Assembly (NCBI GenBank): GCA_021613535.1
Contig: CP075496.1
Span: forward strand, 14,694,001-14,758,000
Direction: 5' to 3'
Origin: Adineta vaga
Taxonomy: Eukaryota; Animalia; Rotifera
DNA length: 64,000 nt
This document shows positions 22,557 through 54,729 of this stretch, piece by piece (the first letter of the stretch is position 1; every line of letters begins with the position of its first letter). The notes beneath the pieces were generated by a model. The model searched no databases, was not told the origin of the DNA, and worked only from the letters and a program-made list of their open reading frames with translations. Both the position numbers and the translations under genes were made by a program.

Positions 22557-25500
22557 CTAATAAGAACCTCTTGCTTGAAAGAGTTCATGGCAACTAGTGC
22601 ATGCTCGTTTCGTTAATTCATCCGTGCAGGCCATACGAAGTCGCTCAACAGTCGCTGGTGAATTCATTGGAAAATACCCTGAATAACCTTGCTCTTCTCG
22701 GTAAACCATACAAGCGCTTTTAAGTGCAAAAAAGGCTGAAGCACCAAGAAAAAATGGAGGTTCACCCACAGCTTTTGATGAATATATAGCTTTAGGATTG
22801 GGTGCATTAGAAAGAAGCTCTATACGCATATCCAATGGAATATCATTAAATGACGGAATTTTATATGTTCCAGGTCCACGAGTAAATAAATTGCCTGGTT
22901 TTATCCATTTGTGTTGTGTATCATCGCCCCATGCGAGTTCTTCCATTGTAAACATACCGAGACCTTGAATAAAAGCACCTTCTATTTGACCAATATCAAT
23001 TTGAGGGTTGAGTGATGTACCAACATCCTGAAGTTACAAAATGATAATTCAACAAAAAGTAATGCTGAATATCCCAAAAACCATGAACTTGGTATTTTCT
23101 ATATTTCTCCTGTATTATCTAGTGAACTACACGATCGTTGTTTTCTGTTTTCAATTATGATCAGAGCCACGAAAGTAAAGAGCTTAGGATCAAGATTACC
23201 ATTAACATATTCTACACTGGCAACAACAATAACTGTCATACTGAACCATGTTTGCAAAAATATCAAAAGTCTTTGATAGATTTCGTACTAATATAGGGCG
23301 CATCCACCGTGAAATTCTAAGTGATTTTTTCGGACACAATTCTTTGTCTTCAGTGTGGAGATAAATCTCGCAACAAGACGTAGCAGAGTTAGAACCGGTC
23401 TGAATCTCCATACAGACTGGCAAAATAACGACGAAAACTTGTCGTTCAGAACTTATAACTTTACCGGTGTAGAACCGGTGCATCTTATACATTAAATGAA
23501 TAATTACTCCATTGGAGATAGAGGTTTTTACGTTAATCTGACGCGGATAAGCACTATTAAAGTAGAAACTTTTCTACTTTCTATTAGTAACAACTGGTCT
23601 TTTAACCTAATTTATTTGAGTTCTAATATTGAGGATTAGCGAAGATTTGATTTCTCTCAAACTAATTTAACTGAGAATTGAGGAAAACTAATACTATCCT
23701 ATCTTTGGCTATATTTTGGTTGGCTGTTCTCAATGACAATATGATTGATTGATTGACAAATGATCGTGTATTTCATATGAAATAATTATTTAACACATCG
23801 AAACATATTTCAATCCATCAAACGGATAGTTCTACATAATAATGGACGAACTAAGATATAAAGCAGAGTTTATCATAAGAAAATTCCTGAACAAAGTTTG
23901 TTGACAGAAGTATTTTCGCAGTTATATGATAAGAGGCGCGAATGCAATTTTCCAAACAGAATGTATTTTTTCTAATATTTTGTCATGAGAAGAACTAGAA
24001 AATACTAGCTGTTGAGATTTTATGAGTGGACCAAAAAAGACGAGACAAACGAGTTCCAAGTTACAATGTCGAGAATCTATAGTGTAAGTCGATGCTATCT
24101 TCAAATATCTGTTAAGCTTTGAGCGTGAATAAGAAAATCGACTCGACAACTTTTGACGATCTCATTCTGTAATGGGGAAGCAAGTCAAGCCCTCCTCCTC
24201 GCGGTGTTTCCTGGATAACGCTAACGGGTCTCTGCAAATCTTTCATGCTGAACACAATATATGGAAATCGTACCTCTCCCCGAGGTGGGATACCGGATCT
24301 AACCCGAAAAAGTTACGGGTACCAAAAACCAATTGCCAACTTGAAGCTAGCGATCGTCTCGCCAAACATCTTAGCACACACGAGGAGAAAGCGCGATGCC
24401 CCAAGGGCACGTTCAGTACAAATAAACATCGAAAGCGACTACAACAACATCATCACGTAATCAATATTGGCACATGGAACGTTACATCGGTAACTGGTAA
24501 GGAAATGGAAGTGGTTGAAGAAGCGCAAAAATATCGTTTTGACATACTTGGCACATCAACAAAAAGAAAAAACAAAGGATCAGTAACGTTAAACAATGGG
24601 TGACATTTATACTACTCTGGTGTTGACACAACAACTTATGCTCAAGCTGGAGTTGCAATGCTGGTAAATCCACGGTTAGTAGACTCAATCATCGAATAGA
24701 AACCAGCCAACGAAAGAGTCGCTCTCCTACGACTTCAACTAAAAAGAGCTACTCTAACGGTCATTCAAATATATGCACCAAATAATGAAACAGACTATTC
24801 AACATGTCTTGATGTTGTCTTTAGAACCATTGAAAATGTATCTGACGGTAGACTTTGTATTACTCATTCATGATTTCAATGCACATATGGGAAATGACTT
24901 ACAAACATGGAATGGTGTTATTGGATCAAATACTGATAAGAATGGCAACAACCAAGGTCCTCAACTACTAGATTTTTGCGCAAATAGCGGATTCTCAATA
25001 ATGAACACATTCTTCCAACACAAAGACATACACAAATATACACGGTACAAGGTAGGTGGTCAAGTAACTCAGAAATTCTTGGTTGACTACATCATTACAT
25101 CGGATAACATTAAACGAAAAGTTATGAATGTACGAGTCAAACTAGGGGCTGAGCTATCTACTGATCATCATCTGGCTATCTGTGTCTTACAGCTATCACA
25201 GAATGCTCTCAAACAACGAATACAAACAAAGAAAGTGTTCAGAATAAAATGAGAAGCACTAGGGGATACGAAAATTAGACAAAAATTCGCAAACAAGGTA
25301 GATCAAGAATATTCCCAAGTACCAAGGCAAGAAGGTGATATTGATTCGGAGTGGCTCCTATTCCAAATAGGTTTAATTAGTGCAGCAGCTGATACATGTG
25401 GCCTGAAACGACTTGGCTTAGTAAATGGTCAAAAAAGAACGGCATGGTGGACAGAAGAAATCCCCCAAATCATAAGCAAAATCAAAGTCGTCGGAAAATT

Positions 25501-28500
25501 CTGGATATCAAATCGAATCAAATTATCATTCGGCGACTAAAGTGTTTTAGCAAACAATTCGACGATTACGCAAAGATGAACTAAAACAAATACGATGAGT
25601 AAAAAATACAAATTGCGAACTCTTATCACGCGAGGAAGAATATTTTGCAGAACTATACAATCCGACCAACAGTCATGGCAACGACATAAACCAGCAAATA
25701 TCAGGTGTTCCAAATGGTATTACAGTGGGTGAAGTCTCATCTGCAATCAAATCATTAAAATCTAGTAAAACGGCTAGTATTGATGAAATTATACCGGAGA
25801 TGTTGAAAGCACTTAACAATGTGGAAAACGGTGGCTAACTCGAATCTGTGGAGTGATATGGAAAACTGGTGATCAAAGAGAGTACTCTAACTACAGAGGA
25901 ATCACTCTGCTGAGCCGTCCTGGTAAAGTTTTTACTAGAATTATTGAACGAAGTTGCTGGCAGATCGTCGAACCTCAAATCCAAGAAAATCAATGCGGCT
26001 TTCGTGCTGGCAGAAGCACAATCAACCAAATATTTACTTTACAACAAATAATCGAAACTCTTGGGAGTTCGCCCAACCAATCTATTCCCTACTCATAGAT
26101 TTGCAAAAAGGAATACGATCGAGTGCCACGTAATATACTTTGGAATGTACTAAAAAGAATTTAGTTTTCAAGATCAACTATTATCATGAATACAATCTCT
26201 GTACAAAAACTGTCAAAGCTGTGTTTGAATAAATGGAAGGAAATCGGACTACTTTCAAGTTCAAGTTGGTTTACGTCAAGGTGGATTCTCTTTTGTTTGC
26301 TGACTACATTGCGCGATTGGCGACATAAAAGAACAGTTTACAAATGACCCTCAATGAGATTTCTTGGTAGAATCTCTGGTTTAACACTACGCGACAAAAT
26401 ACGTAGTACAGTATCAGAGGATTTTTACTAATAGAAGCACTTTTTCAACATACTGAACGATCTCAACTACGATGACTCGAACATGTAATTAGAATGCAAC
26501 ACAATCAATTTTGGTACCAAATATTCGCAGCAAAACCAACCGAAGAAAGACCCGTTGAACCACCGCGAACAAGCTGGCGAAAATATTAAAAAAAACTGTC
26601 TGAAGCCTTTAAACCTCCAGTGGCGTGATTTACAACAAGCAGCAGTTGGTCGCATTCGATGGAAACCACTAGTGAGCGTGCTTATACCCAGACCCGCAAG
26701 GATAAGGGGAAGAAAATGAATGAATGAATTATTCTGTGATGTAACAAATAGCGAAGGTGTACAGCTAAGATTTCAAGAGAAGTCAAGGACTTGTCAACTA
26801 GCAACAGAAACTCGTATTTTATCATGAAAACCAATAACAATTAGAAAAATAGGCATTTTCAATGATTTGAATTTTTTTCTAAATGGAAAAGACCGGTAAA
26901 AACCGGTGAAGATCGGCCGATCTGAAAAGTTGAACTGGACTGAACCGATCCGGTTCCAAGTCTGAGACGTATTAGATAGTGCCTTTTTTCTCGAGCACAG
27001 TCACGATCATATGGTCATGTAATACATTAATATCATCCTATCCATCAAAACACTCTTTTTACCATCGTATAGAGCCTTAAATTCTTTTCAAAACTACACA
27101 CCAATACCTTCGAAAAACAATCTCAGTAGAACCGCTGATGAACACTTACTTTTTAATGGCATCGTCATGTGCCTTAAGAAACTACAATCAATAGCGATTT
27201 TTCTTGCACTGACATATCGATCATGTTAAACGTGATGTGCTAGTCTATAAACACGCCCTAACAAGCAGCAATAAAATGTTTAAGAATTAAGGGAATGTCG
27301 TGTCTTGCTGTTTCTTAAGTATAAACACAAGTTTTCTTCTGTAATTTTGTTAATGAAAATTCGATCATTCAAAATTTTGGTCATTTTTAAAATAAAGGGT
27401 GGAGATATATATATATAAAGAGTCTCATATAGATGTAGAACTTCTCACACTGAATCTGCTGACATATTTTGTTGCATCCTACGAAACAGTAATAAATAAA
27501 TAGAATGAAAACTGCCGTCATTCATAAATAGGCATGCAACCACACCGGTGAACCAGCGAGATTGGTGGTTTTATAGACAATGAATTGTCACTTACTTCTA
27601 AAGCAAAGTCATTGGCATGTTAACAGACCAAGATTTTTGTCAGGATCGCCATCTATAACAGACAGACGATCCTTAGCAAGTTAGTAGTTTATTCACTGTT
27701 TGTTTTCGTTCGCTCGTCTTTTTCATGAACAAAATAAAGGTTTTCCTAGATTTTTAACCACTTCTACAGCATTCTTTCGTTTTTCACAGGCATGGGTCCG
27801 AACAGTTTCCTGTTCTACCTTTTTAAACACACGTTTTAAAGAGGATCCTCTAGTACGTCATTAAAAAATTTATATTTTTATATGCAGATAGCAATGAATT
27901 TCATGAGTAGTATATTTGAAATTTATTGGACTGTAAACGTCAAAAAGAAAAGATAGATGCATTATTGGTCTGGACAATTTTAACGAAAGAAGAAAGATAC
28001 TCTTCGATTAATTTTTGAAAATACATTTACAGAAGATGTAAAGAACTAATTGATATACGTATGAGAAAATAATGGTAGTCTTCTAATCCCTCTCTTAGAT
28101 AATTTATTTCAAACGGATTTTTTTATTGAGGAATGGTCTTCTAATGATAGGTGTCTTCTAATATGTCCATGGCTTTAGAGCAACAAGATATTGCTGGACA
28201 TTTCAGTTACTATTAAATGAAAGACTCGAAGTATTTTTCGTTGGTTCATCGTCATTGTTGTATGCTTATTCATATTGTCCGTGTCGTCGCATTTTTATAG
28301 CTTTTCGTATCTCGTTAGTTTTATCCTTTTTCATATATTTCTAAAATAGTTTATTAGAGAATTTGAGGCGCTCTATTTTCAACGAAAAAGAATGTTTTAA
28401 TGAACGAAATAACCGGGCAGCAACATGAAAAATGTTCAGAGACTCATTTTTCGCAAGACATTCATTAGTTTGACATACTTACCATAAGAATATCAGCACG

Positions 28501-31500
28501 CAGAATATGCCAATCACCTGTTAATGCATCTAATTCAACTTCTGTGACAGCAGCACCTTGTGTAAAATAGTGAAAAGTTGCTTTATTTTGAAGAAAATCT
28601 GCACCTATTGGTTCTGGTGTTGCATAATGTCCATGTGCTGATAAACCAATACGTGAAAAATATGCTTTTTTAATAAGATCTTTCCATGACAGATCTGAAT
28701 CATCAACGAGAAGTTTATTTAATCGTTCACGTATTTCTTCACATGCAATCCGAATAGCCATACCATTCAAATCCGAAGAAGCCGATGCTGCGGTTGGACT
28801 TGTATTAGGTACTTTATCAGTTGCTGTTTCACTAATGTGTATTCGACTAACATCACAACCCAACACTTCAGCGGCTACAGATACCATTTTAGTATGAAGA
28901 CCTTGACCCATCTCTGTTCCTGAGTTTCAAAGAAAAGTCTATTTCTAATGTTCTCGAAAATGTTCTCATTTCATACCTCCGTGGCTAATTAATACCGACC
29001 CATCCTTATAGATATGAACTAAAGCACCTGCTTGATTAAGAAATTTCGCTGTAAATCCAATACCAAATTTTGTTGGAAGAATTGCCATACCTCGTTTTCT
29101 ATATTTATTTAATGTATTAAATTCTTCAATATTTTTCTGTCGTTGAATAAAATCACTTGATTTAAGAAGTTCATCCATTAACCGAGGTACGTTCCAGTGT
29201 TCTAACGTTTGACCAAAATGTGTTATATCTCCCTCTTTATACATATTTAAGCGGCGAATAACAAGTGGATCAAGTTTAAGATATGTTGCGACATGATCAA
29301 TAATTATCTCGCAACCAAAAAGACCTTGTGGGCCACCAAAACCACGAAAAGCTACATTAAGAAAAATTCTGAAATCGTAACTATATCGCACAAAATAAAC
29401 CTGTATTTGATGGTAGATGTGTCTTACATAAACGTCCGCGTACTCGAATATTTGGAAATCGATAAGTATTATCAACATGTAACATTGCACGCTGTAAAAT
29501 CGGTAATGACAAATCAAATGAGCATCCAGCGTTAGACCATAAAAACATATCAAGTGCTGTAAATAGACCTTGCTTTGTAAAACCAATTTTGTATTCAATT
29601 TTAAATGGATGACGTTGACCAGTAATAGTCATATCAACATCACGTTCTATATTTAAACGAACAGGACGAGCAACTTTTACAGCAGCTATAGCTATAGCCA
29701 CACATGGAGTAATTCTACATTAAAACTTTAAATATCGAACAAAAATTGGCAGATCCATTTCACTTACGATCTTGATTCTTTCCCGCCAAATCCTCCACCC
29801 ATACGTTTAACATAACATGTAACATGACTAACATCATAGCCAAGTGCTAATGCAGTTAATTCCTGAGTTTTACTTGGATTCTGTGTTGATGAATACAATG
29901 CAATTTCTAATCCATCATTTGATGGTATAGCCATGCAACAGTTTGTTTCTAAGTAGAAATGCTCTTGACCACCAATTAAAGTAGTTCCCTCAAGAATATG
30001 TTCAGCTTCATCAAGACTTCTTTCAACATCATTTTGTCGAAGACATTGCTGTTCTCCCAAATACGATTCATGTTTGATGGCACTATCAATTGTAAATACT
30101 GTTGGTGTTAGCAGTTCATACTCAATATGAACAAGATTAGCAGCTTTACGCGCATCTTGTTCATTTTCACATAAAACAACACCAATAATAGCACCAGCAC
30201 ATGGTGTTATTGATGAAACGAATATTTCTTCATCACATACAACATCACCTGTCATGTTACTACCACAAATATCATTATGATTAATAAATGAAATGAATCC
30301 AGGCACTTTAGATGCAGCGTCAAGACCTATTCAGAGTTAACAAGAATATTTTTTTGTTCAAATCAATATATAAAGACCCATTTTACCAATATGCTTTATT
30401 CTCGCATTTGGATGTGTTGCAAGTACTAACGCAGCATGCAGAGTATTAGGCAATGAAGGCATATCGTCAATATATTTCGCTTCACCTGTTGTGTGTAAAT
30501 AAGCTGAACGATGTGATAAAGATGAGCCTATGACTTTTAGTGAAGATGGTCGCGTAGGAAATGTCTGTTGACCATGAGATATTGTTCGTTCATAAGCATA
30601 AGCGGCTGAAATATCTCTCGAATCAACAGATGATTGATGTAATTCAGAACAAACATTAAGATAAAATTTAAGAAGAAATGATTGAACTAATGTGCGTCTG
30701 AAAAACAAACATACCATATATCATCATTAATTTATTCATAATAGTTTTGCGTAGTCTGCGGTACCTTTGCGAAGCCTTCAAAATTCTATATTACGGTACA
30801 GTTGTATGAGATATTAATTACTTTACTAAACCACCTTCCGGGTGGATGGAGTATAGTGTAAGGGTGTGAGTATCTCTCTTCTCTTCTCTTCACCTTCACT
30901 CACATCTTTGATATTTCATCGGTTGAACGTACCTGAATTTTTAAAATAGAAAGGTTCGAAATGATACAATCGATCTGATTCAAATTGTCAAGCTTTTTGA
31001 CAATGTATCGGGTAGTTTATTTCGTTTTTAATAAATAGTACTAAATGATACATTATCGACGTACGAAACAATAATTTAGGTTGTATCATCTATTTTTGCA
31101 AAAAAATTTAAACCACCTTTCTGTAATTTAGCAATTTTTACAGTAGGACGAAAGAAAATGAAATGAAAACAGTATGGTTTGGGAGAGTGATCGATTCCCA
31201 ATTCAAATGTATCAGAATACAGAATTCTCGTGTTTTTACATAGGTAAAGCAGACTACACAAAACCATTAACAATAACTTCATCATGGTGTATATAATTAC
31301 TATCATTAATATCAAATATTTCTTTAGAATATAGATACCTGTATTCTGGTCGACCGCCTGGAGTAATTTCATCTAGTGGCATTTCTTTTAATGCTAACTC
31401 ACACGCTTTATCAATACTTTCTTTTGCCCATATTTGTCCAGTTAATTCTTGTTGAGTATATTTTAGTAAAATTGTTGTTGGCCCCATCCCACCAAATGAA

Positions 31501-33495
31501 AATCGCGCATTAACTATGCGCCATTGTTGCGTATGTGAAGAATTTATTGATCGAAGTTCAACTTGAAGACCAGCACTAACGATACTAATGTCATCATTAC
31601 GACGACGTGCTTGTTTATATGAACGAAGAAATGTTTCATTTTTGGATGATGGAATCGGTATATGAACATAAACAAGTACTTCATCATCGGTCATTGCAAC
31701 ATGACGATAACCAAGAAAAAAATCTCGTAACGGTACAAACCGAACTAAATTTGCTTTAGTTCTATGCAATTCTACAGTAGCATCAGCAGCTTGAAGAATT
31801 GGATTAATATCAGAACTAAAACAAACAGAAGAATAATTTTAATTTTGCTTATTATTTGTATTGATTTACATTGGTGAAGCATTAACAATATTTCCTCCAA
31901 GCGAAGCAACATTTCGAATTTGTCTTGATGCAAAGTATTTTAATTGATCAATTAATGCTTGACATATTCCACCATCAACTTTTTGATTATTCCATTCTGT
32001 AAGTTTCACTTGTAAATGCGTTAATGTAACACCAGCACCAATAACTAATGATTTTGATGTGCGTTTAAATTGTTGAAGTTCTTCTATGCGTGTTAGAGAT
32101 ATGTAACGTGAGTATTTTAAACATTTCAGTTTGGTTTCGATCTCAACTTCTGTATTGCCAAAAATGAGTTTTGATGCGTTACCTGGATAAGTATGACGTA
32201 AATGAAGTAATTCGTTAAGATTAATAGGGCAGTACCATTCAAATAATGCCGCTGAATCAAAAGAAATATTTTAATTATATTCTATGATTAGTTTTTAATT
32301 AATAAACCTTTTATGTGTATTGATTGAGGAGTATCGTAAAATAATTCTTTAGGAAATTGCATTTGATTTAGTTCTTGATCATTTTCTTTAACAAATGAAA
32401 GGCATTTATCCAGTGTAGTTGATATTGGTTTCAACGTTAAAGGATCCTTCCCTGGTAATTTATAGATATCATTTGCAAATGTTTTTGCTGCATCAAGAAT
32501 TGGTCGATAGCCCGTACAACGACAAAGGTTTCCATCAAAAGCTTCTTCGATATCTCGTATTGTTAAACATGACTGTGAAGAATATGATGATGCTACTTTT
32601 CCATATAATGACATAACGATGCCAGGTGTACAAAAACCACACTGAGATCCATAAAAATCAGCTAGACGAGATTGAGTTGGATGAAGATTTGCTTTAGCAA
32701 CTGAACCTAAGCCTTCGACAGTCACTATGTGACATCCGTCGACGGAACCGATCGGTGTAAGACAAGCATTAACGGTTCGATGATCGAGAGAACCAGAATG
32801 TCGATCAAGACATTGAATTACTAGAACTGTGCATGCACCACATCCACCTTCACCACAACCCAATTTTGAACCAGTTAAATTCAATTCTATATACAATATA
32901 AATAGAGTAATTAAAAAGTTCTGCCATTTTCTCATATTGATACAGTGAAACGATATTGCATCTATCTTTCTAGACCATGTAGGCGAGACAGTTGTTGCAT
33001 TATTCTATGGAAAGTTTCATCTTTGTAGCTAACTACTAGTGTATCTTTCTGAATCAACGAATTGGTAAAAAACTGACTCTGTCGATTATTGATTAAAATT
33101 TACTAGACTGTTAACTGTTAGATATTTGATAAACTTCTAAGAACGAAGAGATTTTACGTGATGCTGTGAGGATGTGTGGGTATTTTTTTCTTTAATCACT
33201 CACACCCACACCCTTGCTGACTTTCTAGCTTAGCTAAAATTAAGAAAAATTTCACATCGAACACAATCAAAATTCTTCTTTCAAAAAAGGGACAGCAAAT
33301 TCTTAGAATGAGCGCTACTTATTTATACATAGCAAAATAACGGTACAATCGAAGAAGACTCTTACTATTTCTAAGGTACCATAGAAGTGTCCAATTAGGC
33401 TCAATATAATCTTCAATAATTTTTTGTCCATTAACATAAAACAGAAGATAATCTTTTGATGAAGGTTTGGATTGTTGTCTTGTTTCTTCCATCAT
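22557..33495 (-). CDS. XDH: Xanthine dehydrogenase (molybdo-flavoenzyme), complete, 10 exons
   Basis: Exon 1 33495-33366 MMEE...FYVNG...WYLRN; 2Fe-2S KLGCGEGGCGAC, QCGFCTPG, GNLCRCTGY; FAD domain; Moco motifs GGQEHFYLE, GGGFGGKE, AFRGFGGPQ, GTEMGQG, AVGEPP; Glu802/Arg880/Glu1261 equivalents retained; last intron 23028-28482. Confidence 0.95.
23384..26964. mobile_element. hAT-type non-autonomous element in the last XDH intron, interrupted by a LINE
   Basis: TIR CAGAGTTAGAACCGG / CCGGTTCCAAGTCTG; 8-bp TSD AGACGTAG/AGACGTAT; subterminal ACCGG repeats. Confidence 0.7.
24175..26730 (+). mobile_element. Degenerate RTE-clade LINE (APE endonuclease + RT)
   Basis: IGTWNV, YAP, DFNAH, DYI, TDHH endonuclease motifs; NYRGITLLS..GKVF and QCGFRAGRST..QIFTL RT motifs; (TGAA)n tail; TSD ATTCTGTAATG/ATTCTGTGATG; many frameshifts. 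Confidence 0.9.
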
Positions 33496-34447
33496 TCAGT
33501 TCGAGTTTTATTCTAAATACATTTAAGGATTAATTCTGAGGGAAACCAAAGGGGATTTTTTGTGCGAAAAAGCAAATGTCGAACCAGTTTTTTGCGCTGA
33601 TTCATTATACGCCAATAATTTAGAGGGCTTATCCTACGAAGTAGGTCGAAATCTGTCAAACCTTGGAGAAAGCGTAGGAAATATGGTATGAAAAACTGTA
33701 CGATCAACTATATTTCACGTAGCAAACTCGGTAGACTATGACATCCTTCACAAAGTTTCGAGATCTATATGACATGAAAATCCGATAAAAAATACAGAAA
33801 CAGGTATTTTGTTTTTTTCGAGATAATGTGCAAAGACTAGGTTATCAAGCACCATATGAGGCGATAAAGAGGTGATAATTCGAGAAACTACCTCTTTTAC
33901 TCACTTGTACTACTTTAGAATCTCAAGAATATTAATTATTGTGTACAGTGGTATTAGTTTTTGAATCCTCTGTGAGAGTGCCAGTGATATTTCTTGAAGA
34001 TATGCATGTGTAAGTAGGATATTGTATGATGAAAATCATGGAAATTACACTCAAACGCTATGTACAACTGAGGCTTCATTTTCGCTAAAAATGTAGATCA
34101 GAAACAACCAAAATTATTGTAGTGTTCTCCGAATCGAAATCTATCGATGTATGTAGTTTCTAAAAGTTTCCGCCGACAAAAAAGTGAGTGCGCCGATTTA
34201 CGGTCTTAAAGGCCTCCGTCCTTTCCTGCCCTTAAATGCTTCAACGCTCTTTTCATATCGTGTTTCACCAAAACCTCTAAAGATTTTTCACCAATCTAAT
34301 ATCTTTTTTTCTTAAACAGAAAAACGAGTAAGTCATATCATGAGATAAATAATACATGAATGTTGTTTTTCTTTTATTTTGCCCGTCTCACCTCTTTTTT
34401 GACGACTGCATCGCAACTAAGGCGCAGTTATCGCTTTCCTCTAGGAA

Positions 34448-36344: not shown

Positions 36345-36620
36345 CTCCTGGATTATCTAGTGGATAATTTTGAATATTAATGAGTATGATCGTTTTTGAA
36401 GTATAAAATAAGATGTAATAGACATGCATGCTCGTTTTTTCGATTTTCACCTAACCGATCGCTTAGTATTTCACCTGCCAATTTTGAAAGGTAAGTGGTA
36501 CTAAACACATAAGAGTCAGTCATAGGTGAGTGGGCGTAGTTACTGCTAAGAATTGCGCCGTCAATGACACTGGCCCACTTTCGTATGTTATACGGTTAAT
36601 TATAGATATTTTTTGTATAT

Positions 36621-40078: not shown

Positions 40079-41103
40079 CCTATTCCTCCATGTTGCACAT
40101 TCCGAAATCGCTACGAATCGCTAGGAACTCCCTGAAAATTCGCCTTGATCCAATCTCGGAGTTAGTTCCCCGAATCAGGTCGTGTACAAATCGTTCGATC
40201 ACTCAGCACGTAGCAATAGGTGAGCCGGGGTAATAACGGTGTAATTACAGTTACAAAATCGCTAGGAATTCCCTGAAAATTCGCCTTGATCCAATCTCGG
40301 AGTTAGTTCCCCGAATTAGATGGTGTACAAATCGTTCGATCACTCAGCACGTAGCAATAGGTGAGCCGGGGTAATAACGGTGTAATTACAGTTACAAAAT
40401 CGCTAGGAATTCCATGAAAATTCGCCTTGATCCAATCTCGGAGTTAGTTCCCCGAATCAGGTCGTGTACAAATCGTTCGATCATTGAGCGCGTAGCAAAA
40501 GGCGAGTCTGAGTGATAAGGGTGTAATTGCGGTTACGAAATCGCTAGGAATCGCTAGGAATTCCATGAAAATTCGCCTTGATCCAATTTCGGAGTTAGTT
40601 CCCCGAATCAGGTCGTGTACAAATCGTTCGATCACTCAGCACGTAGCAATAGGTGAGCCGGGGTAATAACGGTGTAATTACAGTTACAAAATCGCTAGGA
40701 ATTCCATGAAAATTCGCCTTGATCCAATCTCGGAGTTAGTTCCCCGAATCAGGTCGTGTACAAATCGTTCGATCATTGAGCGCGTAGCAAAAGGCGAGTC
40801 TGAGTGATAAGGGTGTAATTCCGGTTACGAAATCGCTAGGAATCGCTAGGAATTGCGGCAAAATTCGCCTTGATCCAATCTCGGAATTTGGTCCCCGAAT
40901 TAGGTCGTGTACAAATCATTCGATCACATGGCGCACATAGCAATATATGACGGTTTGATTCGAGCACTTAATTGCAGAGTCGAGTGGAATTCGATGCTAC
41001 CTGATTCATTTGGTAATCGAAGCTGTTTGGGAATGCCGGGAATGGGTTGTAACTGACTCCTTGGGTTGAATTGATTCCGAAATGTGCAACATCGTGGAAC
41101 AGG
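40079..41103. mobile_element. TIR element carrying an internal tandem array
   Basis: TIR CCTATTCCTCCATGTTGCACATTCCGAAATC vs GATTCCGAAATGTGCAACATCGTGGAACAGG. Confidence 0.7.
40110..40945 (+). repeat. Tandem array of about six 141/151-bp units
   Basis: AAAATTCGCCTTGATCCAATCTCGGAGTTAGTTCCCCGAATCAGGTCGTGTACAAATCG recurs six times; two unit variants. Confidence 0.95.
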
Positions 41104-44500: not shown

Positions 44501-47500
44501 AAAACGAATCTTCGATGAAATTGATTCAGTTTGGTTTTCTTACATAGCGAGAAATGCGTCTTTAACCATGATCTCTGTGTTAAATGCTGTGTTAATAATG
44601 AACTGGGATGCAATGGGAATATGTGGATTGCACGGAAAATAGATGGCAGAATGGCTTGGAAGAAATGTAGTTGTATGAAGTATTTTATGTATTATGTTTG
44701 AATGAGTGATGCTTGAAATTGGAAATGAGTTATGGGAGTATCATTCGAAGATGCGATTGGGTTTCGAAATATGTGTTCGGTGACGATTTTTATGGAATGT
44801 GTGCGGTTAAATTTTGACAAGATGTTACTAGAAAATAGTGTTACTAGGGCGACCATGGTCCAATTCCTGGCCTCCATAATGGTGTTTCATGGTTTTGAAT
44901 TTTTTCATTGGCCGATTTTTCGGCCAGTTGGATTTTGTTTTACGTGTTGCTAGCGTTTCGTGGTGCTAGCTTCACACTGATCTTCATTTCGATCAAAAAT
45001 CTCAAAAAGACCAAAAACCGACTTGGCCGTTTCGGCATGGTCTTAGTAAAAACCGTTTTTCTCAGCGAGGAGTGAATCCGATTTCTGGTCCCTTTACAAA
45101 TCCATCTTTAGATCTGGATGTTCGAAAAGTACGGCCATTTTACTGAAATGTTGTGTTTTGCAAATATCTCAGCAAGGAAAGAGTGTTGACAGCCAGGGAC
45201 GTGACATTCGTGATCAGCAACCCATAACCTATAGAATGATGTAATAAAAAAGCGAACTTTTTTTTACTGCAAGCTTGCCCTGGGTGCACCATATATATAT
45301 ATATATGATTTTTGTCATAATTTATTTATAAATTTTGTCATTCTCGAGTTTTGGCTTGAAACTTCGTATACAGAGAGGTCTTAGTCAAGGTAGTTAATTG
45401 TGAAAGTTTTAGCTTTCCTGATGTTTCTCACTGGAGATATGAGCACTAATACTGGTATTTGCAAGTGGCATCAGGTATCACAGCTGTTTCTTCACACAGA
45501 AACAATGACTAGATCTAAAACTTTCACAATAAACTACTCTCACTTAGACCTTTCCTTGTACGAAGTTTCAAGCCAAAACTCGAGAATGAGTTTTTCTGAA
45601 ATCCCTGAGGGGGACCACGGCAGTGTGTTATCCCAGTACCTTAACAATACAATATCTCAACAACAAGAGAGCATGGGGAAAAATCCCTTTAGGGTTTCTA
45701 TTTATACTATGAGCCCTACTTATGGACAAAAAATCAGCTTGATCGGAGGGTGTCACCTGAGGAGGTTCCCTCGTAAGAGCCCAGTGGGCTTCTATTCTGG
45801 GAAAAGTTTAATCACTTTGTCTCTTCGATATTATTCTATGTTCTATTTTTGAAAAATAACAAATATCGAGCATAATAGCAAGCGTAATCGAAAACAAATT
45901 TCATTTTATTAATACAAATTTATTCAATCAAATCTTGTGTGCAAAAGCATTAGATAAAGAAAAAACAATCGCCGAGCAGTTTTGATAATTTTAGACAACA
46001 GAAACTCGAAATAGAACGTATTGAGTTTTTTTCTCTGATATTCAACCGAATGTAATAATCATTGATAAAACGTTATATATAAATATCTTTATTCCCCATT
46101 ATGCAAATATGAATGCAAGGGGAAACAACAGACTCGAGGACTCCATGGATTTTACAGCATTTCAAATTATCTCGGAGTCCTTTGGAGTCTATCGCAGTTC
46201 GTGAAGTCGGTGGACTCCTATAGGTTTGGAGTCCAATGTAGCCTATGGAGTCCCGGGATCCTGAAATATGCCGTTTCCCCTTGTATGAATGCGAGGCGCG
46301 AGATATTGTTTGAATAAAATTATGTTGAAAAATGAAATCTGTTTTCGGTTACGTTTGCTATTATGGTCGACATCACATACCTATGTCATCATTCCGATAT
46401 TTATCATTTTTCAGAAGTGGAAATTGGAATAAGATCAAAGAGCAGATGTGTAGAAAAAAGTGATTATACCGCTTTAAGAAACAGATGAGATAAAATATAG
46501 TCAGTTTTATGTATATGTATGCCCATACAGCGATCGACAAAAAAGGCTTATTAGAACAAACTTATGTTTAGTTTTGATCTAATTTAACCGATTATCTAAT
46601 TACTATATTAATGACGGCTAAAGAAAGAATTGATACAAGAAATATCTCGGTTAAAGTCTAACAATACATCTGCTTACTATTTATAGTTCCAATTATACCG
46701 AACTATCTGTATGAAACTGAGCACAAAACTCGTCAGAATATTGTAAACAACTGTTCGTTGAACTTTACTGGCAAGCTATCCTCAGCGGTAAGTAATATCA
46801 ACAATGATGTCCTTCGTCAAGACATAATATTATAACACCAGGTATGGAACAATGCGAACATTTCCTGTGTTTTCATACGGAACGAAACTCTACGATCCAC
46901 TCAATTGCAAGAGGTCAATAGAAAATGAAAATTTATTATATTAATTTTTATTCCGCTTTCTATTATTTCTATTCGTAAGTAGGAAGCTGCTCGCGTGGGT
47001 ACTCTAATGGCCGCAACAGGAGTTACACAGGTAATCTGAATTTATCTGACTTTTAGCACACGGTCTTCAGTTTGTTTCCAATGCATTAAGAATTTTTCAT
47101 ATCAGTCGACAAAATTTTAAAATACAAATTGTTCTTTGTTTCTATGTATGGCGATATACTTACTGGAGAGGAGTTTTATTGGTTACCGATAATTCTAAGA
47201 ACCAACTGACAAGTTGTCAGTGGATGATTTAACTTTGAAGAGGGTGGGCGTGGATAAGTGAGCGCGTGGATATGGATAAGGGTATTTATATAGATCAAAA
47301 TATTATATATACATACATTCCATATGCTCTCAACACTGAGGATACAATATACTGAACTATCGTAGTGTCTTAACGGGTGTTCTAAAAAGATGGGCCTCTC
47401 GGAACTTTTCAGGTCTCCCTTTGTTGTTTTTATAATTAAGATTTCTTTTTATCAAAAGATAGCGCTTGAAATTTTCTAGAGAAGTTTTTTTTAAATATTC

Positions 47501-50500
47501 CCTCGGCTGAAAGGAGCGTGTAGTACAAGAAATGGAAATGCGTTTGTATGTTTGCCTATTTACGATAGATTTTTCCATGCGAGAAAATACATGGTTCTAT
47601 CGGAATGATATAAGCATATTTGTGTAGCTACATTCACTCATAGTCTTGAATAACTTCAGCTAGTATAGAATCATCTACCTTCATCATAGTAAATGTAGAA
47701 GTCTCGGACTGAAATCCGAGTGTTATATGTATTTCAAAAAGTGATACTATTCCCTGTGAATCATTAAATTCTTGACAGATTCAATAGTTTACTAACTGTT
47801 TGAGTAGACAAAAAGAAGCTAGAAACTGTGAAGTAACCGTGAACACTGGGAGTGACTAGTTGTTCCTGATACTGCATCATGAATTAGGTGAAAATTTGGC
47901 CAACATGTTTATATAATGTAATCCATTGACTCATCCTAATATTGTACAACATTAATCTTTGTACATAAAGGATTCCAATATAAGGGGTGCGGCAAAATAA
48001 ATAGCAGGCTCATTGTTTCAACCACCGTTCTCTTATTTGTCGCCCTATTGAGCTGAACTTGTTCCAAAAAGATGCGTCGTGAAATTCTCTACAAAAGTGT
48101 ACATTTTATTTAATGCAAATAGTTTCCGCTGTTTTTTGACAAACGATGCAAACGATTAATCTAGCTAGCACAACTTTTTAACAGCACTTATCAGTTTATC
48201 GAGTAAAGTTTTTCTGATTGAATATTGTCCCATTTTATTTGCTCAACTAGTTCATCGCATATGCAATAGTCCAGAGGATTCATATTGGGACTATTTGGCG
48301 GCTAGCCATCTTTATCGATAAAATTCGGGAAATTGCTTTTACACCACTCTTGTGATAATCGATGAACATGTGGCTTTGCACCATCTTGTTGATAGGTCCA
48401 ATCATTCCCAAATACTTTATTTCCATACTTTTTGCCTACTGGTAAGACTTCCTTAATATAACGTTCATGATCAAGAGTTTCTTGCTCAAAAACAACTAAA
48501 TAGTGTCTCACCTTTAGAGCACACATTTAACCGAACCATCACCTTCTGTGGAAACTTTCGCTTTTGTTTAACACCAACTTCAGCATCGGCTTCAGCACAG
48601 TGGGCAGCCCATATTCTAACATTTTGAGCATCATACGTTCCATATAAATTAAACATCTTCTCATCGGAAAAAATAATTTCGATAGTTTGCTCTTTGGAAA
48701 ACCTGTTGCGTACCCGATTCGCAAATTTAATTCTTTTGATTTTTTGAATATCAGTAAGTAATGTTTCGACTCGTTGTTTATATGGTTGAAGTTTTGAATC
48801 TTCTTTTGATACTCGTCGTACTAATCTATCAGAAATACTAAAGTCTTTTGCATTTTAATCGATTTTTTCACTTTCGTTCTCATTTCCTTTATTTCGAGCA
48901 ACACGTGGATGACCGGTTGGACTCGATATATTAATTAAACCGGTTTCTCTGATTAACTTGCATCACGTTTCAATCGTTCTAGGACCAATAACAACGTATA
49001 AATGACGAAATATTCCTGTTACACTATCGCCGTTTTTGTAAAGAATTTCACGGCGCATCTTTTAAAAAAAGATCAGCTCAATAGGGTGAAAAATAAGCGA
49101 ACGGTGGTTGAAACAATGAGGCCACCATTTATTCTGCCACATCCGTTATTTCACATTAATTTTTCAATTAAGAGTCAAGTGAATCACTAACGAGGAGCGT
49201 TGTTTATAGATAATGCTCCTCGCTAGTGACGCATTCGATCCTTGACTGGATAATTAACATAAATGAACATTCTGAATAGTGTTGTTAAGCAGCTGAATGT
49301 TAGCCTGACATATTTTTATCCCATTTGTAAACAAAGTACACAATGGAAATAAGGTTCAAATCACAGTCTTTTAAGGACACTCGGTATTATCACAGCGTTG
49401 TGTCTACGCGGTATTGTGTTCATACAATATTTTTTTCACGTGATGCTCTTTTGCAACCGTTTGCTCACGACGATATCTCTAGTGACATTGATTCTGATCA
49501 TTTTGAGAAATATATTTCGTTAGATATGAGGCTTTGTAGAACTTTGATGTTTCTTTACTTTACTAGAAATGAATTGTTTTTTGGCTCGATACTATTTTTT
49601 TTCTAGTTACTTGGCAATTCTATGATTGGTATTATTACTCTTAGGTACAGTTATATCACTAGGTGTATAAAAAATGATGAAGCAATGTCAAAATAACTCT
49701 CATAGGATTGGGTACACAATACCAATGTTCCTTGGTTTTAGTTTGATGCTAACAACTATTATGAGTGAGTGCCAAGGATATTTTGATCATGATGATGTAG
49801 CCAGTGCTTGTATATAGTATTTATCTTTGCGACAACATATACATGGTTCGTGGTGGCGCGTGTAATTGAAGGTGTGGGAGCATCATTATCGTTCGCATCA
49901 GGTGATATATTCGCTGATGACTTTATCTCCATATTTTTTGTATTTTTTAGCTAGTGGAATGTTGTCTGAACGATTTCCAGATGATCATGAGCGTGGCATC
50001 ATACTCGGTCGCGCGCAGAGTGGTATGAGTTTGGGTGCAACGGGTAAGTAGGATTTTCATGATGTGGTGTTGCGTTAGCTATTAATATTCATGTTAATTA
50101 CTAGTTGGACCAATATATGGCGGTGTATTATATTATTACTTTGGTAAAACAGTGCCGTTTGCTATCCTCGCTGGAGTTGTGCTTATCGATGGACGTAAGT
50201 TTGAAACAGACCATTTTCATGTTCTTTTTCAATGATATTTTCTATCAGTACTTCGTTTAAGTATCATTTCAAAGAAGCCTGAAACAGACTACGAAAATTT
50301 CAGAAAGAAAAAGAATTTGGGTGGTTGCTCTACGTTAATGTTTCTTCAAGATCCATTAATACTCATTACTGTTGGTGAGTTTCTTCCATACTCTATAATG
50401 ATTATACCATACTATGCTCATTTTAGGTGCCATTATCGTGAGTCTAATCGGCATTAGAGCTCTTCAGTCCATCTTACCTATTCACATGATGATAGTATCA

Positions 50501-53500
50501 CCAACCATAACATCATTGCAAGAAGGTATTCATACATCGTGACATATTCGATAGCATGCACCATACAATGGTGTGGCTAACGGTTATTTAGTTCATAGTT
50601 TTAAGAGTGAGCGTGTGGATGTTAGTAATACTACAAAAGATATCTACAATAGGCATGAAAGATCGGCGATTTTTGGCGAGGGTGATGGTGTGTATATGAT
50701 TGTAGAGAGTAGCATCCACATTCACGCCGAGCCTCAACTTCTTTTAACGTTCACCACATTGTTTAACAAAAACACAATTTTTTCGTGAAATACGCATAAA
50801 CAAGTATAGTTCTCTAAATAAGCAGTCGATTGATGAGTGAGCGGCTTTATTCTCGGAAGAGAATCATTATATGATCCGTTTGAATAAAGTTTAAAAAAAA
50901 GGAACTATAACATCAATCGCTTCAGGAAATTGATAGGTGTGGGAGGGAGATCCTACAAAAATGCATGTTTTTGAAAGATCTCTTTCTAAATGATAGTGCA
51001 AAATGTTTCAGACCTTTTCATTTTTCCGATTTATACAGTTTTAACGACCGGCCGCTCTCTGACCGAACCAGATTGGTTGAAAAATTTTAGACTGCTTACA
51101 ATTCTGATACACATGACACTTCGATTGAATCCAAGGTTTCTGCATTTTTGGAAGTGTTATTCTGATGCAAAAGTGTATGAAAAATATTACTGATATAGTT
51201 GTCGTTTATGAGAATTTGTAAAAACGGATAAAGAGTATACGTGTTTGGGCAGATATTGTTGTACAATTTTTCACGTAGAAAAGTTCGCTGTCAATCTGTT
51301 CCTCTGTCCGATTAATACGGCTGTAATGTTAAGCTTCGAGATAAGCACTGTGAAAAACCCAAGGTATGTTTGTGGTCCACTCTTGCTGCTATTGAGCCTG
51401 ATTGTCACTGTATGAATATATGGAAATCAGGCATCTATAGCTATATATATATAACGAAGAGTGTTTGTCTGTCTGTTCGCTATGCATTCAGCCTCTATTA
51501 TAGCTAGCGTCACCAGACTGTCCATAAAACTACCGTATGTACAGGGAAAACTCGACAGGGTGTGGGAGACGGAAGGTAATTGAAATTCAATTCAATTTAT
51601 AGCAGCTGATTTGAACGTTCTTTAGAGTATCTATTACTATGCTTTTGACCTAATCTGCTTGTGTTACACAGAAGTGAGGGTGATTCAGAAGTAAGATACT
51701 CACCGCCACACAATAATTGTTGTACTATAGTGTTTCATCATGGACGTGCGCGTATTCGTGATAAATGAAACTTTAACTCGAAGTCTAAGACTTTTTAAGT
51801 GCGAACTGAAATGGAAGTAAAGCAGCGGTGGGATTCTGTTGGAAAATGGGTAGATGTGGAATGCTACATAGAATGAGTTGTACTATCTTAGATATGCGTG
51901 CCGGGATATGCAGTGACAAAGATGAAAATTTTCAAGAGCTACCTTCTGTGCGTCCTCCGTCGTTTTCTGACATATGAAGTTTTCAGTTTGGAAGGTTCTG
52001 GACCACTAACGGATACCTCCGCTAGTATTCTATGAAAACAGAGAACTATGAAGCTTTTGAGCATGCATTAGAAATTGTCTATAATTTATTGAGTTAGGTT
52101 TGATAATGGTACCATTAGCAATTGGCTTCGGCACAAGTCAAAACACATTGGGATCGCTTTCCTTCCGTGTGGGCCGGTACGTTTCATTTTAAATTGTGCT
52201 TAAAAAACAAAATTTTATTTCTTACACCTTCAGATGGTTATCCTGCCTCATTGGTTTGTGGATAATTGGTATTGGCTTCTTGATTGTAAACTAATGGCTG
52301 TAATTTATGCTATTAAAACCGTGTATTTATTCATATTGCTAGATGTCCTGGTGCGATTCGATTCCAGTGTTGCTTGTAGTAATCTATATAATAGGTTTTG
52401 GAGGCGGAACAGTTCTTGTTTCAGCAGCACCTATATTGCCGCGTTTGATCGAGCTCCGACATTCTTCATCCGACTTCGCAAGTGTTTTTGCTCTGTTTGA
52501 CTCTGCCATTTGTCTTGCAGCGATATTAGGTATGATGTAAAATAGTTCGTCGCTTGTAAACAGATATACGCCAGTACAATTTGACTGAATTTCTACAACA
52601 AAAGTATCGAATGATCCTTTAAACAGGGCTTGGCGGGGTCCCCTTGATTCTTATTTTTTCCTGAAATATATTTCAAGTATACGGAGTACGAAACTTCATT
52701 TTATAAATTCGAGCGCATTTTTCTGATTCAATAATTAATGCGACGCGAAGCACAGCATTTACGTAGTCCGTCGCGAGTTTTCTTTGTTCCTTTATCTATT
52801 TCTTCCTATCATCCGTACGCAACTGAATTTTTGATTTTCCGTGACGATGATCTTACGAACGGCACATCGAAAAGAAGAGGTGTCAGACGAAATCACAGAG
52901 GATTCCGTGCACTTAAAAAAGGTTTCGTAGTGTTCCAAGGAAACCTTGAAAACGGTAAGTGAGTGCTCGAGTGGTCTAATGAAAGCGTCTTTGGTTGGTA
53001 CAAATCTTTCAAAGGGTATGGATTTCGTTCCCAGGACGATTCAGTATAACAATCATTTTTCTATCCAGTGCAGATCAGAAAAAACTGATTTAAACGCGAA
53101 AATAAAATACCAAGACTAAACTCGGAAAATCTATTTTAGTAATTCAATTATGACAGTTGATTCATATAATCGATGACGATAGAAGAGACGAGTTTGTTTT
53201 CTGTTTTTTTCTGAGATAGTTAAAACGAGTTTTGAAACAAAAGTTAGGCGCTATTTTCATTTAAACATCTGTTTCACTGCTGAAGAAAAGTTAATTTTTT
53301 GTTGAAAACTTAAGTTCTACATCCAATCAACAGTGAAATTCGTGCTTCGTATCGCATTATTCGTACGAGTATGAAACTCACGTGCCATCTAGCTTTGATT
53401 ATAGCTGCTTCAAATCAGTTGTTAATCTATCGACTGAATGGAGGGTGTATTGCAGAAAAATAGAAATGCGTTTGTATGTTTGTCGTGGGTCATAGGTCAG

Positions 53501-54729
53501 CAGTACCAGTAGATGTAAATCTACTTGCCCTCATTCAATCCTTCAAGTCCTCAAGCCTTATACTAGGTACATACGAAACAAAAATGGTTGCTATACTGAA
53601 TCATTTTTGAAACGAAATCGAAACCCTTTGGTAAGTTTCTTATTAACCTAAGACGATTCTATTAGACTTGCTGAGGGATAACTAATATTTTCTGGAGGTT
53701 TCATTTGATCTGAAAGACGTTTTTAGATGGTCGTTGTTTACTATGAAACACTTTTTAAGTACAGGACAGCCTCTTTGATTTCGCCTACCACCATTTTTTT
53801 GTGAAACACGATCTGGAAGAGTGTTGAAGTGTACAAGGTGCAAAATTTGGACTCACAGACGTGACAGACTGGTTCAAAGACCCTTTCACAGACTTGAACG
53901 ACACTTCTACAAGTCCCATCACAGGCGTCACAGACTCAGAACCTTCTACAAAGATGGCCGACTGATTCAATTACTCTATGACTTCATCTTGAGGGTTTGG
54001 ACGTGGATGAGGATAGCCCATTTACACATCAAGTCTACCCACACTTATCCTCTCTATCAATATGGACAGATCTATGGTGTTTCACATTTTCAATCCCAAA
54101 AGGATTGCACTAAAAGCTTTTTAATGTTGGTAGATATCTAATCACGGGGTGGGTATGTGAGTAAGGGTAAGGATGCGGTATTCATTTCACACACATATCC
54201 TCAAGATGCGTCTACTAGAGCATTGACATGATCATAATCTATGGCAGAGTAAACATATTGACTTTAAAGCTAAAATTTCAGTTTCGGTATTGAAGCATGT
54301 CTTGATTAGTCCCAATCATAAATTATTTTTGCCATGGATATTCGACTTAGTTGCAGAATATCATGCCTCGTTGACTAGCTATGTCCATTTATGCGTTATT
54401 ATGCGAAATTTCATCTAATGTAGTAAATAAACAAAGTATGTGTGATTTGCGTTTATAGGAAACTCAATTGGTGGCTATCTAATGAATGTCATTGGCTTTT
54501 CATGGATATGTATTATGGCAGCTGTTCTGCAATTTTTGTATGCACCTCTCCTTATTTTTCTCCGTGTAGAAAAGGAAGCAAAATCGGAAGATGAACATCA
54601 AGTAACTCTAAATATCTATATAATTATATTATTTACTTGAACAAGTTATTTTTCTCTCTTTAGTCATTGATTAAAGACGAATCAATGACATCAATGGTCT
54701 CGCCCGATAGCTCTACTATCCCTCGATAA
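41527..54729 (+). CDS. MFS transporter, SLC18 (vesicular amine transporter)-like, ~16 exons
   Basis: Exon 1 41527-41638 SRLLVIIICFVAFFLEYTLYMCV joins IPIIPNYL (46687); RIGYTIPMFLG, ARVIEGVG, RFPDDHERG, GPIYGGVLY, QDPLILI, ELRHSSSDFASVFALFD; stop at 54729. Confidence 0.85.
41911..42220. mobile_element. Degenerate ~310-bp MITE
   Basis: Imperfect TIR TCCAGATCACGTGGGTGAAGTTAG / CTAACTTTACTCGCGTGGCCTGGA. Confidence 0.45.
42652..45288. mobile_element. Long-TIR non-autonomous DNA transposon (CCCAG termini, possibly CMC/EnSpm-like) in SLC18 intron 1
   Basis: Left arm 42652-~43210 mirrors ~43900-43967 plus ~45036-45288; TGCA flanks both CCCAG/CTGGG ends. Confidence 0.75.
43977..44981. mobile_element. 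MULE-type non-autonomous element nested in the right TIR of the previous element
   Basis: TIR ATCAGTGTGAAGCTA(A/G)CACCAC; perfect 9-bp TSD CTTCATTTC (43968-43976, 44982-44990). Confidence 0.85.
45338..45589. repeat. Imperfect ~250-bp palindrome (MITE core)
   Basis: TCATTCTCGAGTTTTGGCTTGAAACTTCGTA mirrored by TACGAAGTTTCAAGCCAAAACTCGAGAATGA. Confidence 0.75.
45806..46466. mobile_element. Degenerate foldback MITE hosting a hAT MITE
   Basis: CATAATAGCAAGCGTAATCGAAAACAAATTTCATTTT mirrored by AAAATGAAATCTGTTTTCGGTTACGTTTGCTATTATG. Confidence 0.55.
46116..46283. mobile_element. 168-bp hAT MITE
   Basis: TIR CAAGGGGAAAC; perfect 8-bp TSD TATGAATG; internal GGACTCC/GGAGTCC repeats. Confidence 0.85.
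47983..49146 (-). mobile_element. Decayed Tc1/mariner maT (DD37D) transposon in an SLC18 intron
   Basis: ~55-bp TIRs with TA flanks; FSDEKMF, WTYQQDGAKPH and PPNSP.MNPLDY with 37 residues between the second and third Asp; stops and frameshifts. Confidence 0.9.
51434..52025 (+). mobile_element. Non-autonomous Helitron
   Basis: A|TC start followed by (TA)n and GTTTGTCTGTCTGTTCGCTATGC; 3' hairpin CGGA-TACC-TCCG then CTAG|T. Confidence 0.75.
53985..54208. mobile_element. 224-bp element with CATCTTGAGG termini and telomere-hexamer hairpins at both ends
   Basis: CATCTTGAGGG...CCTCAAGATG inverted ends, each end carrying a degenerate GGGTGT.../...ACACCC cassette. Confidence 0.55.

Follow-up and report, generated by a model that had tools for sequence, protein, structure and literature searches.

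A head-to-head xanthine dehydrogenase and ToxA/XrdM-type methyltransferase gene pair in the bdelloid rotifer Adineta vaga: candidate two-gene module or neutral relic

Introduction

To our knowledge, animals rarely have functionally linked pairs or clusters of genes in which a native enzyme is combined with a horizontally acquired one, and no other animals carry as many foreign genes as the bdelloid rotifers. Whether such a unit exists is the question raised by a locus of the bdelloid Adineta vaga, in which a gene for xanthine dehydrogenase (XDH), a gene for a methyltransferase (MT) of the ToxA/XrdM type and a gene related to the vesicular amine transporters of the SLC18 family follow one another. 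They lie in a stretch of 64,000 nucleotides, hereafter the window (contig 4, 14694001-14758000; contig 4 is 15,224,634 bp long, the genome 100.8 Mb in six contigs), about 0.47-0.53 Mb off the end of contig 4. An earlier note read the trio as a candidate cluster whose products may oxidise, methylate and sequester an N-heterocyclic compound. On the evidence presented below we tentatively prefer a smaller unit, to which we give not quite an even chance: a working two-gene module of XDH and MT, with the SLC18-like gene as a bystander and not a three-gene cluster.

The AV20 assembly of Adineta vaga comprises six chromosomes, which form the homoeologous pairs 1-4, 2-5 and 3-6; the subtelomeres are enriched in rearrangements, transposable elements (TEs) and foreign genes, and synteny of foreign genes was observed between non-homoeologous chromosomes (Simion et al., 2021, PMC8494291). 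No literature was found linking bdelloids or Adineta with xanthine dehydrogenase. In the following, the window genes are called XDH_C4 and MT_C4 and their counterparts on contig 3 XDH_C3 and MT_C3; further copies are denoted by contig and position.

Results

A second head-to-head pair on contig 3

XDH_C4 and MT_C4 are arranged head-to-head, with 4,420 bp between their start codons, and the SLC18-like gene starts 2,792 bp after the stop codon of MT_C4; the three are consecutive, no other recognisable gene being found among them in the open reading frames (ORFs) of the window. Their positions and spacings, as given in the earlier note, were confirmed by mapping of exons, ORFs and Pfam domains (Table 1). 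A second pair of the same two genes is present on contig 3, also head-to-head and with a gap of 1.2 kb. Both MTs of the genome that belong to the bdelloid clade described below adjoin an XDH; two other MT matches are distant (28-30% identity).

A comparison of all ORFs in 164 kb of contig 4 with those in 130 kb of contig 3 gave no match at E < 1e-6 other than XDH and MT, and only weak, family-level matches of G-protein-coupled receptor (GPCR) type were added at E < 1e-3; hence the pair does not belong to a larger colinear stretch. The duplication is old, since MT_C4 groups with Adineta steineri P0002 (support 96) and MT_C3 with Rotaria P0003 (support 92). Similarly, the partner of XDH_C3 in the tree is Rotaria Silwood1, and that of XDH_C4 is the copy on contig 2 (C2 type). 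That the two pairs are ordinary homoeologues was considered and rejected, as contigs 3 and 4 are not partners in the published pairing (1-4, 2-5, 3-6) and the divergence is far above the typical value of ~13% at the nucleotide level. No XDH or MT match was found on contig 1, which, provided that contigs and chromosomes are numbered alike, is the published homoeologue of chromosome 4.

The methyltransferase and its family

MT_C4 was assigned by Pfam to the class I S-adenosylmethionine (SAM) methyltransferases (Methyltransf_25, 11, 31, 12 and 23), and its best solved relatives by sequence are XrdM (8rdl, E 1.8e-18) and then ToxA of Burkholderia glumae (E 8.5e-16). The AlphaFold2 (AF2) model (predicted local distance difference test, pLDDT, 92.3) has the class I SAM fold with a flap domain, and in a Foldseek comparison with the PDB ranks 1-11 were all ToxA or XrdM (E ~1e-18), followed by the next family at 1e-14. 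XrdM is the amide N-methyltransferase of xenorhabdin biosynthesis, and the family residues comprise Tyr7 on a mobile N-terminal segment, Tyr/Phe14, and Phe/Trp112 stacking on the substrate, as well as His/Asn115 and Tyr116, which bond the carbonyl beside the target nitrogen (bioRxiv 10.1101/2024.01.12.575338). Y22, Y31, Y141, Q144 and Y145 of MT_C4 occupy family positions 7, 14, 112, 115 and 116; the N-terminal Tyr, the aromatic residue at 14, the stacking aromatic residue at 112 and Tyr116 are kept, and position 115 is polar, with Gln where ToxA and XrdM have Asn or His. MT_C3 reads Cys-His at positions 115/116, where MT_C4 reads Gln-Tyr.

With ToxA (PDB 5JDZ-5JE6) and XrdM (Xenorhabdus, PDB 8RDL) MT_C4 thus shares the predicted fold, the SAM motif and these aromatic residues, but identity amounts to only ~24-33% (the upper value being an estimate off the alignment), and MT_C4 differs from both in a 6-residue insertion before motif I, an N-terminal extension, and its place in an animal genome next to an XDH. 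Neither tox (toxBCDE) nor xrd genes were found among the window ORFs near MT_C4, and uncharacterised proteins of ~245 aa outscore ToxA against it (up to ~96 bits vs 61-70). As a statement about the family, its description as a ToxA-like methyltransferase is supported by sequence, predicted fold and most catalytic residues. A public protein model (P0001, 228 aa) covers 84% of the MT_C4 frame; its apparent start at Met45 (window 37916-38047 precedes it) would omit Y22 and Y31, which align with ToxA/XrdM residues 7 and 14. Translation probably starts at the ATG at 37916.

The picture of the family stems from an exhaustive protein search; a word-based search gave only the window MT, and a rotifer MT profile four proteins. 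Eight representatives were retrieved at E < 1e-30, after which the matches fell sharply to proteins of ~245 aa at ~30% identity. Of the seven among them that were looked up, three belong to metagenome contigs and four to named bdelloids (A. steineri, Rotaria sp. Silwood2 and D. carnosus). One more Rotaria protein follows just past the cutoff, and after it a protein of Chitinophaga, the first match that is named and not of rotifer origin. In the tree the rotifer-type sequences formed one clade (support 99) against an outgroup of mostly unnamed metagenome proteins, with at least three subclades older than the split of Adineta and Rotaria. As the simplest reading, these sequences suggest an old bacterial acquisition of the MT and a subsequent expansion in bdelloids. 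The proposal that the locus was assembled partly from foreign genes accordingly finds support for the MT, a member of a bdelloid-only clade whose nearest outside relatives look bacterial; for the XDH the comparison, based on one exon, was uninformative (see below). In A. steineri (L011) two MT copies are arranged in tandem (9821-10660 and 17224-17944), the second of which matches in two frames (17224-17655 and 17657-17944).

The xanthine dehydrogenase and its paralogues

The exons of XDH_C4 and of the SLC18-like gene were searched singly, and scans for GT-AG introns tested only whether frame-preserving junctions exist. Pfam recognised on the XDH_C4 exons, in order, Fer2, Fer2_2, FAD_binding_5, CO_deh_flav_C, Ald_Xan_dh_C, MoCoBD_1 and MoCoBD_2, so that two 2Fe-2S domains, a flavin adenine dinucleotide (FAD) domain, the alpha/beta hammerhead and two molybdenum-cofactor-binding domains follow one another in one chain. 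The gene is colinear in 10 blocks at 70-80% identity with the complete XDH of a rotifer-like metagenome contig (L052), with no part missing; about 1,370 codons are open, and a frame-preserving GT-AG intron is possible at 9/9 junctions. Most introns measure ~40-57 bp, two are mid-sized and one extends over 5,455 bp. This large intron carries broken ORFs on the plus strand (24157-26098), decayed fragments of a non-long-terminal-repeat (non-LTR) retrotransposon with weak matches (Exo_endo_phos_2, E 1.9e-4; RVT_1, E 9e-6).

XDH_C4 keeps Gln767, Glu802, Arg880, Arg912, Phe914, Phe1009, Thr1010 and Glu1261 (bovine numbering), the equivalents of Arg880, R912/F914 and F1009/T1010 having been placed by alignment to bovine and human xanthine oxidoreductase (XOR), and displays the motifs GGFGGKE, GGQEHFY and KAVGEP. 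All six residues with roles in the purine site of XDH (Glu802, Arg880, Phe914, Phe1009, Thr1010 and Glu1261) are present. Mammalian XOR was the best PDB match, above Rhodobacter capsulatus XDH and above aldehyde oxidases, the latter being outscored in every exon tested; for one exon XOR reached 149 bits, Rhodobacter XDH 99 and aldehyde oxidases 92-101. Judged by its sequence, XDH_C4 is an XDH-type and not an aldehyde-oxidase-type enzyme, and it looks functional. It resembles mammalian XOR (bovine 1FO4/3UNA, human 2CKJ) in being a single chain with the full set of seven domains and identical catalytic residues, but unlike it XDH_C4 is one of several paralogues, sits on a long branch in a rotifer-only clade and is paired with a methyltransferase.

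XDH-type paralogues number at least five in the genome, to which a distant copy is added (C4, i.e., the window; C2:11.19 Mb; C3:10.41 Mb; C3:11.59 Mb; C5:4.33 Mb; C6:12.2 Mb). Closest to XDH_C4 is the C2 copy with ~70-80% identity (about 75%), vs 60% for the C3:11.59 copy. The branch of XDH_C4 (0.31) is long compared with that of the C2 copy (0.059), and without exception the XDH fragments of other rotifers lay closer to the C2 copy than to that of the window. Four copies (C4, C2, C3:10.41 and C6) have Arg880, which is replaced by Cys in C3:11.59 and by Leu in C5; both copies without it (contig 3 11597438-11597746, contig 5 4333460-4333768) retain Glu802, Arg912/Phe914 and Glu1261. The loss of this arginine in two paralogues suggests that they derive from XDH but act on a new range of substrates. 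No significant MT remnants were found ahead of the C2, C3:10.41 and C5 copies (~1.3-1.5 kb of upstream sequence). A copy in Rotaria sordida (L050:9637-11542) consists of the N-terminal exons and the last exon only and is thus internally deleted; it is annotated as one protein of 382 aa.

Search and tree concerning the origin of the XDH were based on the N-terminal exon (about 200 columns), and only matches of similar length were accepted. After some 55 rotifer fragments the matches were mixed (Coemansia, dinoflagellates, a crinoid, a sponge, fish; 51-59% identity), and in the tree the rotifers formed one clade (support 95) apart from a clade of all other sampled eukaryotes. On a native versus a foreign origin, the latter proposed as a non-metazoan type, this tree is uninformative.

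A tandem of Mo-cofactor sulfurase and XDH

On contig 2 a gene part with MOSC_N and MOSC domains (11185560-11186420) lies ~450 bp upstream of the conserved XDH paralogue and on the same strand. At the same spot two rotifer-like metagenome contigs show a complete gene with Aminotran_5, MOSC_N and MOSC (L052:7019-9544, L053:4821-7346; also the contig of P0190). Molybdenum-cofactor sulfurase, which activates XDH, has this architecture, and going by these domains the tandem is a conserved pairing of an enzyme with its activator in three rotifer genomes. Sulfurase remnants were found neither near the window XDH nor near the contig-3 XDH.

The SLC18-like gene

For four exons of this gene VMAT1/VMAT2 were the best or only PDB families, in colinear order (residues 12-43, 145-185, 367-419 and 388-429), which places it close to VMAT/VAChT exon by exon. 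In VMAT2 numbering Asp399 is replaced by Leu and Asp33 by Glu, Asp426 is kept, and Glu313 is apparently Gln (read by eye only), so that of the protonatable residues Asp33, Asp399 and Asp426 only the last remains. Asp399 is an essential residue in VMAT; the description of the transporter as remodelled is supported for this position. Like VMAT1/VMAT2 (SLC18A1/2) the window gene has Asp426, and its C-terminal helix is closely similar to that of VMAT; it differs from them, besides the substitutions, in its span of 13 kb, its TE-filled introns and an uncertain exon for transmembrane segment 2 (TM2). All exons can be linked by GT-AG introns only with the TM2 exon in the frame of 49353-49520. From its sequence the gene is clearly divergent and plausibly intact. 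Of the three genes that the earlier note had called intact, XDH (possible introns at all nine junctions) and MT (a single open frame) fit that description, whereas the SLC18-like gene can be threaded through 13 junctions but leaves the TM2 exon ambiguous. Paralogues of SLC18 lie at C2:16.17 Mb, C4:2.89 Mb and C1:9.31 Mb, none of them near any XDH or MT paralogue, and none was found at the contig-3 pair (130 kb). ORFs on the minus strand at 48305-48854, mariner-like by eye, had no Pfam match.

Repeats and neighbouring genes

Two inverted-repeat elements, I1 and I2, occupy the spacer between XDH_C4 and MT_C4, which without them would measure ~1.55 kb; I2 ends 321 bp upstream of the MT_C4 start codon. 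Both look young because their arms are 100% identical. Arms of I1 recur as inverted pairs on contigs 5 and 1 (66-76% identity), and I2 has 24 matches in the genome, many of them inverted pairs (71-94% identity); by their sequence, I1 and I2 are probably young mobile elements of the foldback or terminal-inverted-repeat type. The surroundings of the genes, earlier regarded as decayed TE debris, are thus of two kinds: the weak non-LTR fragments in the 5.4 kb XDH intron agree with that view, the elements in the spacer do not.

Elsewhere in the window a papain-family cysteine protease gene (17050-17766, minus strand), a rhodopsin-type GPCR gene (62226-63206, plus strand) and a Cys/His-rich ORF (7284-8057, plus strand), read by eye as ZZ-type zinc fingers, were noted; none of the three has a counterpart around the contig-3 XDH-MT pair. 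Upstream of the window, ORF listings indicate a tandemly duplicated gene pair ~18 kb apart (contig 4 ~14655700-14658630 and 14674120-14677030; ORFs of ~456 and 518 aa).

Table 1. Coordinates of the genes and repeats discussed (positions in the window unless a contig is named).
Feature	Position	Strand	Remarks
XDH_C4, whole gene	22557..33495	-	ATG 33495 to stop 22557; Pfam and colinearity with rotifer XDH
XDH_C4, coding blocks 1-5	~33358-33495, 32306-32914, 31869-32240, 31335-31817, 30382-30708	-	
XDH_C4, coding blocks 6-10	~29767-30330, 29399-29719, 28969-29355, 28480-28920, 22557-23027	-	
XDH_C4, large intron (5,455 bp)	23028..28481	-	sole frame-preserving GT-AG solution, 28482 to 23027
MT_C4, ToxA/XrdM-type N-methyltransferase	37916..38734	+	single exon, 272 aa; Pfam, PDB, AF2/Foldseek
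MT_C3	contig 3 11592735-11593493	-	39% identical to MT_C4, its only close paralogue in the genome
XDH_C3	contig 3 ~11594776-11599115	+	compact gene, ~60% identical to XDH_C4
VMAT-like SLC18 gene	41527..54640	+	exon matches to VMAT1/VMAT2; weak MFS_1 matches
SLC18-like gene, candidate blocks, first part	41527-41638, 46687-46815, TM2 exon within 49354-49465 (frame uncertain), ~49683/49706-49764, 49818-49901, 49951-50043	+	
SLC18-like gene, candidate blocks, second part	50105-50194, 50249-50374, 50427-50494, 52094-52176, 52234-52285, 52343-52529, 54459-54640	+	
Inverted-repeat element I1, XDH-MT spacer	34440..36352	.	625-nt arms 100% complementary, 663-nt centre
Inverted-repeat (foldback-like) element I2	36638..37594	.	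459-nt arms 100% complementary, 39-nt centre
Tandem array between MT and SLC18-like gene	39959..40927	.	about six or seven units of ~141-151 bp; families D1 and D2

Discussion

In the proposed module XDH and MT would be transcribed divergently from a short shared upstream region (~1.55 kb without I1 and I2 in the window, 1.2 kb on contig 3), and their products would act in sequence. The XDH would hydroxylate a carbon beside a ring nitrogen in a purine-like heterocycle, giving a lactam with N-H beside a carbonyl, and the MT would N-methylate this new lactam group, just as ToxA and XrdM do with the substrates proper to them. Between the two pairs the substrate may have changed, as their XDHs differ in Arg880 (Cys on contig 3) and their MTs in Gln-Tyr (Cys-His on contig 3), and the VMAT-like gene 2.8 kb downstream would be a bystander. 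The chemistry of XDH hydroxylation appears to fit a methylation of the ToxA/XrdM type. The module is favoured by three observations: both MTs of the clade are paired, the surrounding synteny has been lost, and the substrate-contact residues differ in both enzymes. That chance brought the two genes together twice, both times head-to-head, is very unlikely (a rough estimate from six XDH loci and ~32,000 genes gives a probability on the order of 1e-7). Possible histories are that an ancestral pair was duplicated and then separated in many lineages or paralogues, or that the pairing arose more than once.

Several observations weigh against such a module. The nearest kin of XDH_C4, the C2-type XDH, is preceded by the Mo-cofactor sulfurase and not by an MT, and because XDH_C4 belongs to the C2-type clade with its different upstream neighbour, a single ancestral pair requires several separations. 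In other bdelloids, where up to 10 kb of each flank, or the whole contig if shorter, of loci in fragmentary assemblies were covered, XDH exons were absent by tblastn at six MT loci (A. steineri, Rotaria sp. Silwood2, D. carnosus and a metagenome contig). These represent two MT subfamilies in A. steineri and two in Rotaria sp. Silwood2; flanks reached up to 10 kb on each side in A. steineri (L011, L013) and Rotaria (L008-10, L020-21) and were shorter in D. carnosus (L018, ~6.4 kb upstream, 0.6 kb downstream) and in the metagenome contigs (L015-17, ~0.4 kb upstream). Conversely, four XDH loci were without MT, one in R. sordida DNA (none significant) and three on metagenome contigs (gene tables). 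A test of whether the genes stay adjacent, as the earlier note had asked, therefore turned out differently for different comparisons: the XDH-MT pair recurs on contig 3, and it is found neither at the loci of other bdelloids nor on contig 1. Furthermore, young TE insertions now split the XDH-MT spacer in the window, and retention of genes 1.2 kb apart can be neutral. As to function, membership of MT_C4 in its family predicts no substrate, because ToxA and XrdM reject each other's substrates (bioRxiv 10.1101/2024.01.12.575338), and one MT relative in a bacterial context follows an FAD-linked oxidase in a dense, ordinary neighbourhood without tox genes.

For these reasons a neutral relic has to be taken seriously, and we regard it as about as likely as the module: a short segment with XDH and MT would have been duplicated long ago and not separated since, the genes being ~1.2 kb apart, with the enzymes serving unrelated pathways and the SLC18-like gene a chance neighbour. 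The partner gene is missing at some ten loci (MT or XDH) in other bdelloids and on rotifer-like contigs, and two TEs have recently inserted between the window genes; both observations are in line with this view, as are the position ~0.5 Mb off the contig end, in keeping with subtelomeres that are rearranged and rich in TEs and foreign genes (Simion et al., 2021, PMC8494291), and a DnaJ-like gene flanking the window pair, whose best paralogue is also on contig 3 (74% identity). However, a relic accounts less readily for two pairs that are both head-to-head while every other gene over >130 kb differs, or for the fact that both MTs of the clade in the genome stand beside an XDH; and the more frequent the separation in other species, the less is a chance double retention in one lineage to be expected.

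It is very improbable, in our view, that one or more of the genes is an unexpressed, decaying copy, XDH_C4 being a redundant, fast-evolving duplicate in a TE-rich chromosome end. The long terminal branch of XDH_C4, the absence, among the sequences retrieved, of an orthologue nearer to XDH_C4 than to C2, the TE load of its introns and spacer, and the internally deleted copy of R. sordida, which exhibits such decay within the XDH family, could be so explained; yet the codons of XDH_C4 are open, its junctions are compatible with splicing and none of the catalytic residues has been lost, and MT_C4 has a full open frame with the SAM motif and the catalytic tyrosines. Very improbable to about the same degree is the three-gene cluster that oxidises, methylates and sequesters an N-heterocycle. 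In its favour are the consecutive order of the genes and a transporter that, without Asp399, may carry another substrate; against it are a contig-3 pair without SLC18, SLC18 paralogues far from every XDH and MT copy, no conservation across species at the loci examined and an uncertain TM2 exon, and the transporter is accordingly dropped as a member.

Returning to the two-gene module, a more specific version of it can be formulated, which we consider rather unlikely: a module built by bdelloids, present in at least two versions and driven by one divergent promoter, in which XDH and a bacterially derived MT would produce N-methylated oxo-heterocycles (methylated xanthines, urates or pterin-like lactams) for defence or stress, the versions being tuned to different substrates. 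A parallel is offered by theacrine in Camellia, which is formed by C8 oxidation of caffeine and subsequent N9-methylation of the methyluric acid. By analogy only, this route would resemble the proposed module in that a purine ring is oxidised and the new lactam then N-methylated, and it differs in that the Camellia N-methyltransferase belongs to another family than MT_C4; the theacrine genes are not known to form a divergent pair.

Should XDH and MT work as a unit, they would provide a compact and testable case of a foreign enzyme wired into the purine or heterocycle metabolism of an animal, in two natural variants open to comparison. Even if the pair is no more than a relic, the locus would document an expansion of XDH across bdelloids, including copies without the purine-binding arginine, as well as a bdelloid-specific family of ToxA/XrdM-like methyltransferases and a conserved tandem of Mo-cofactor sulfurase and XDH.

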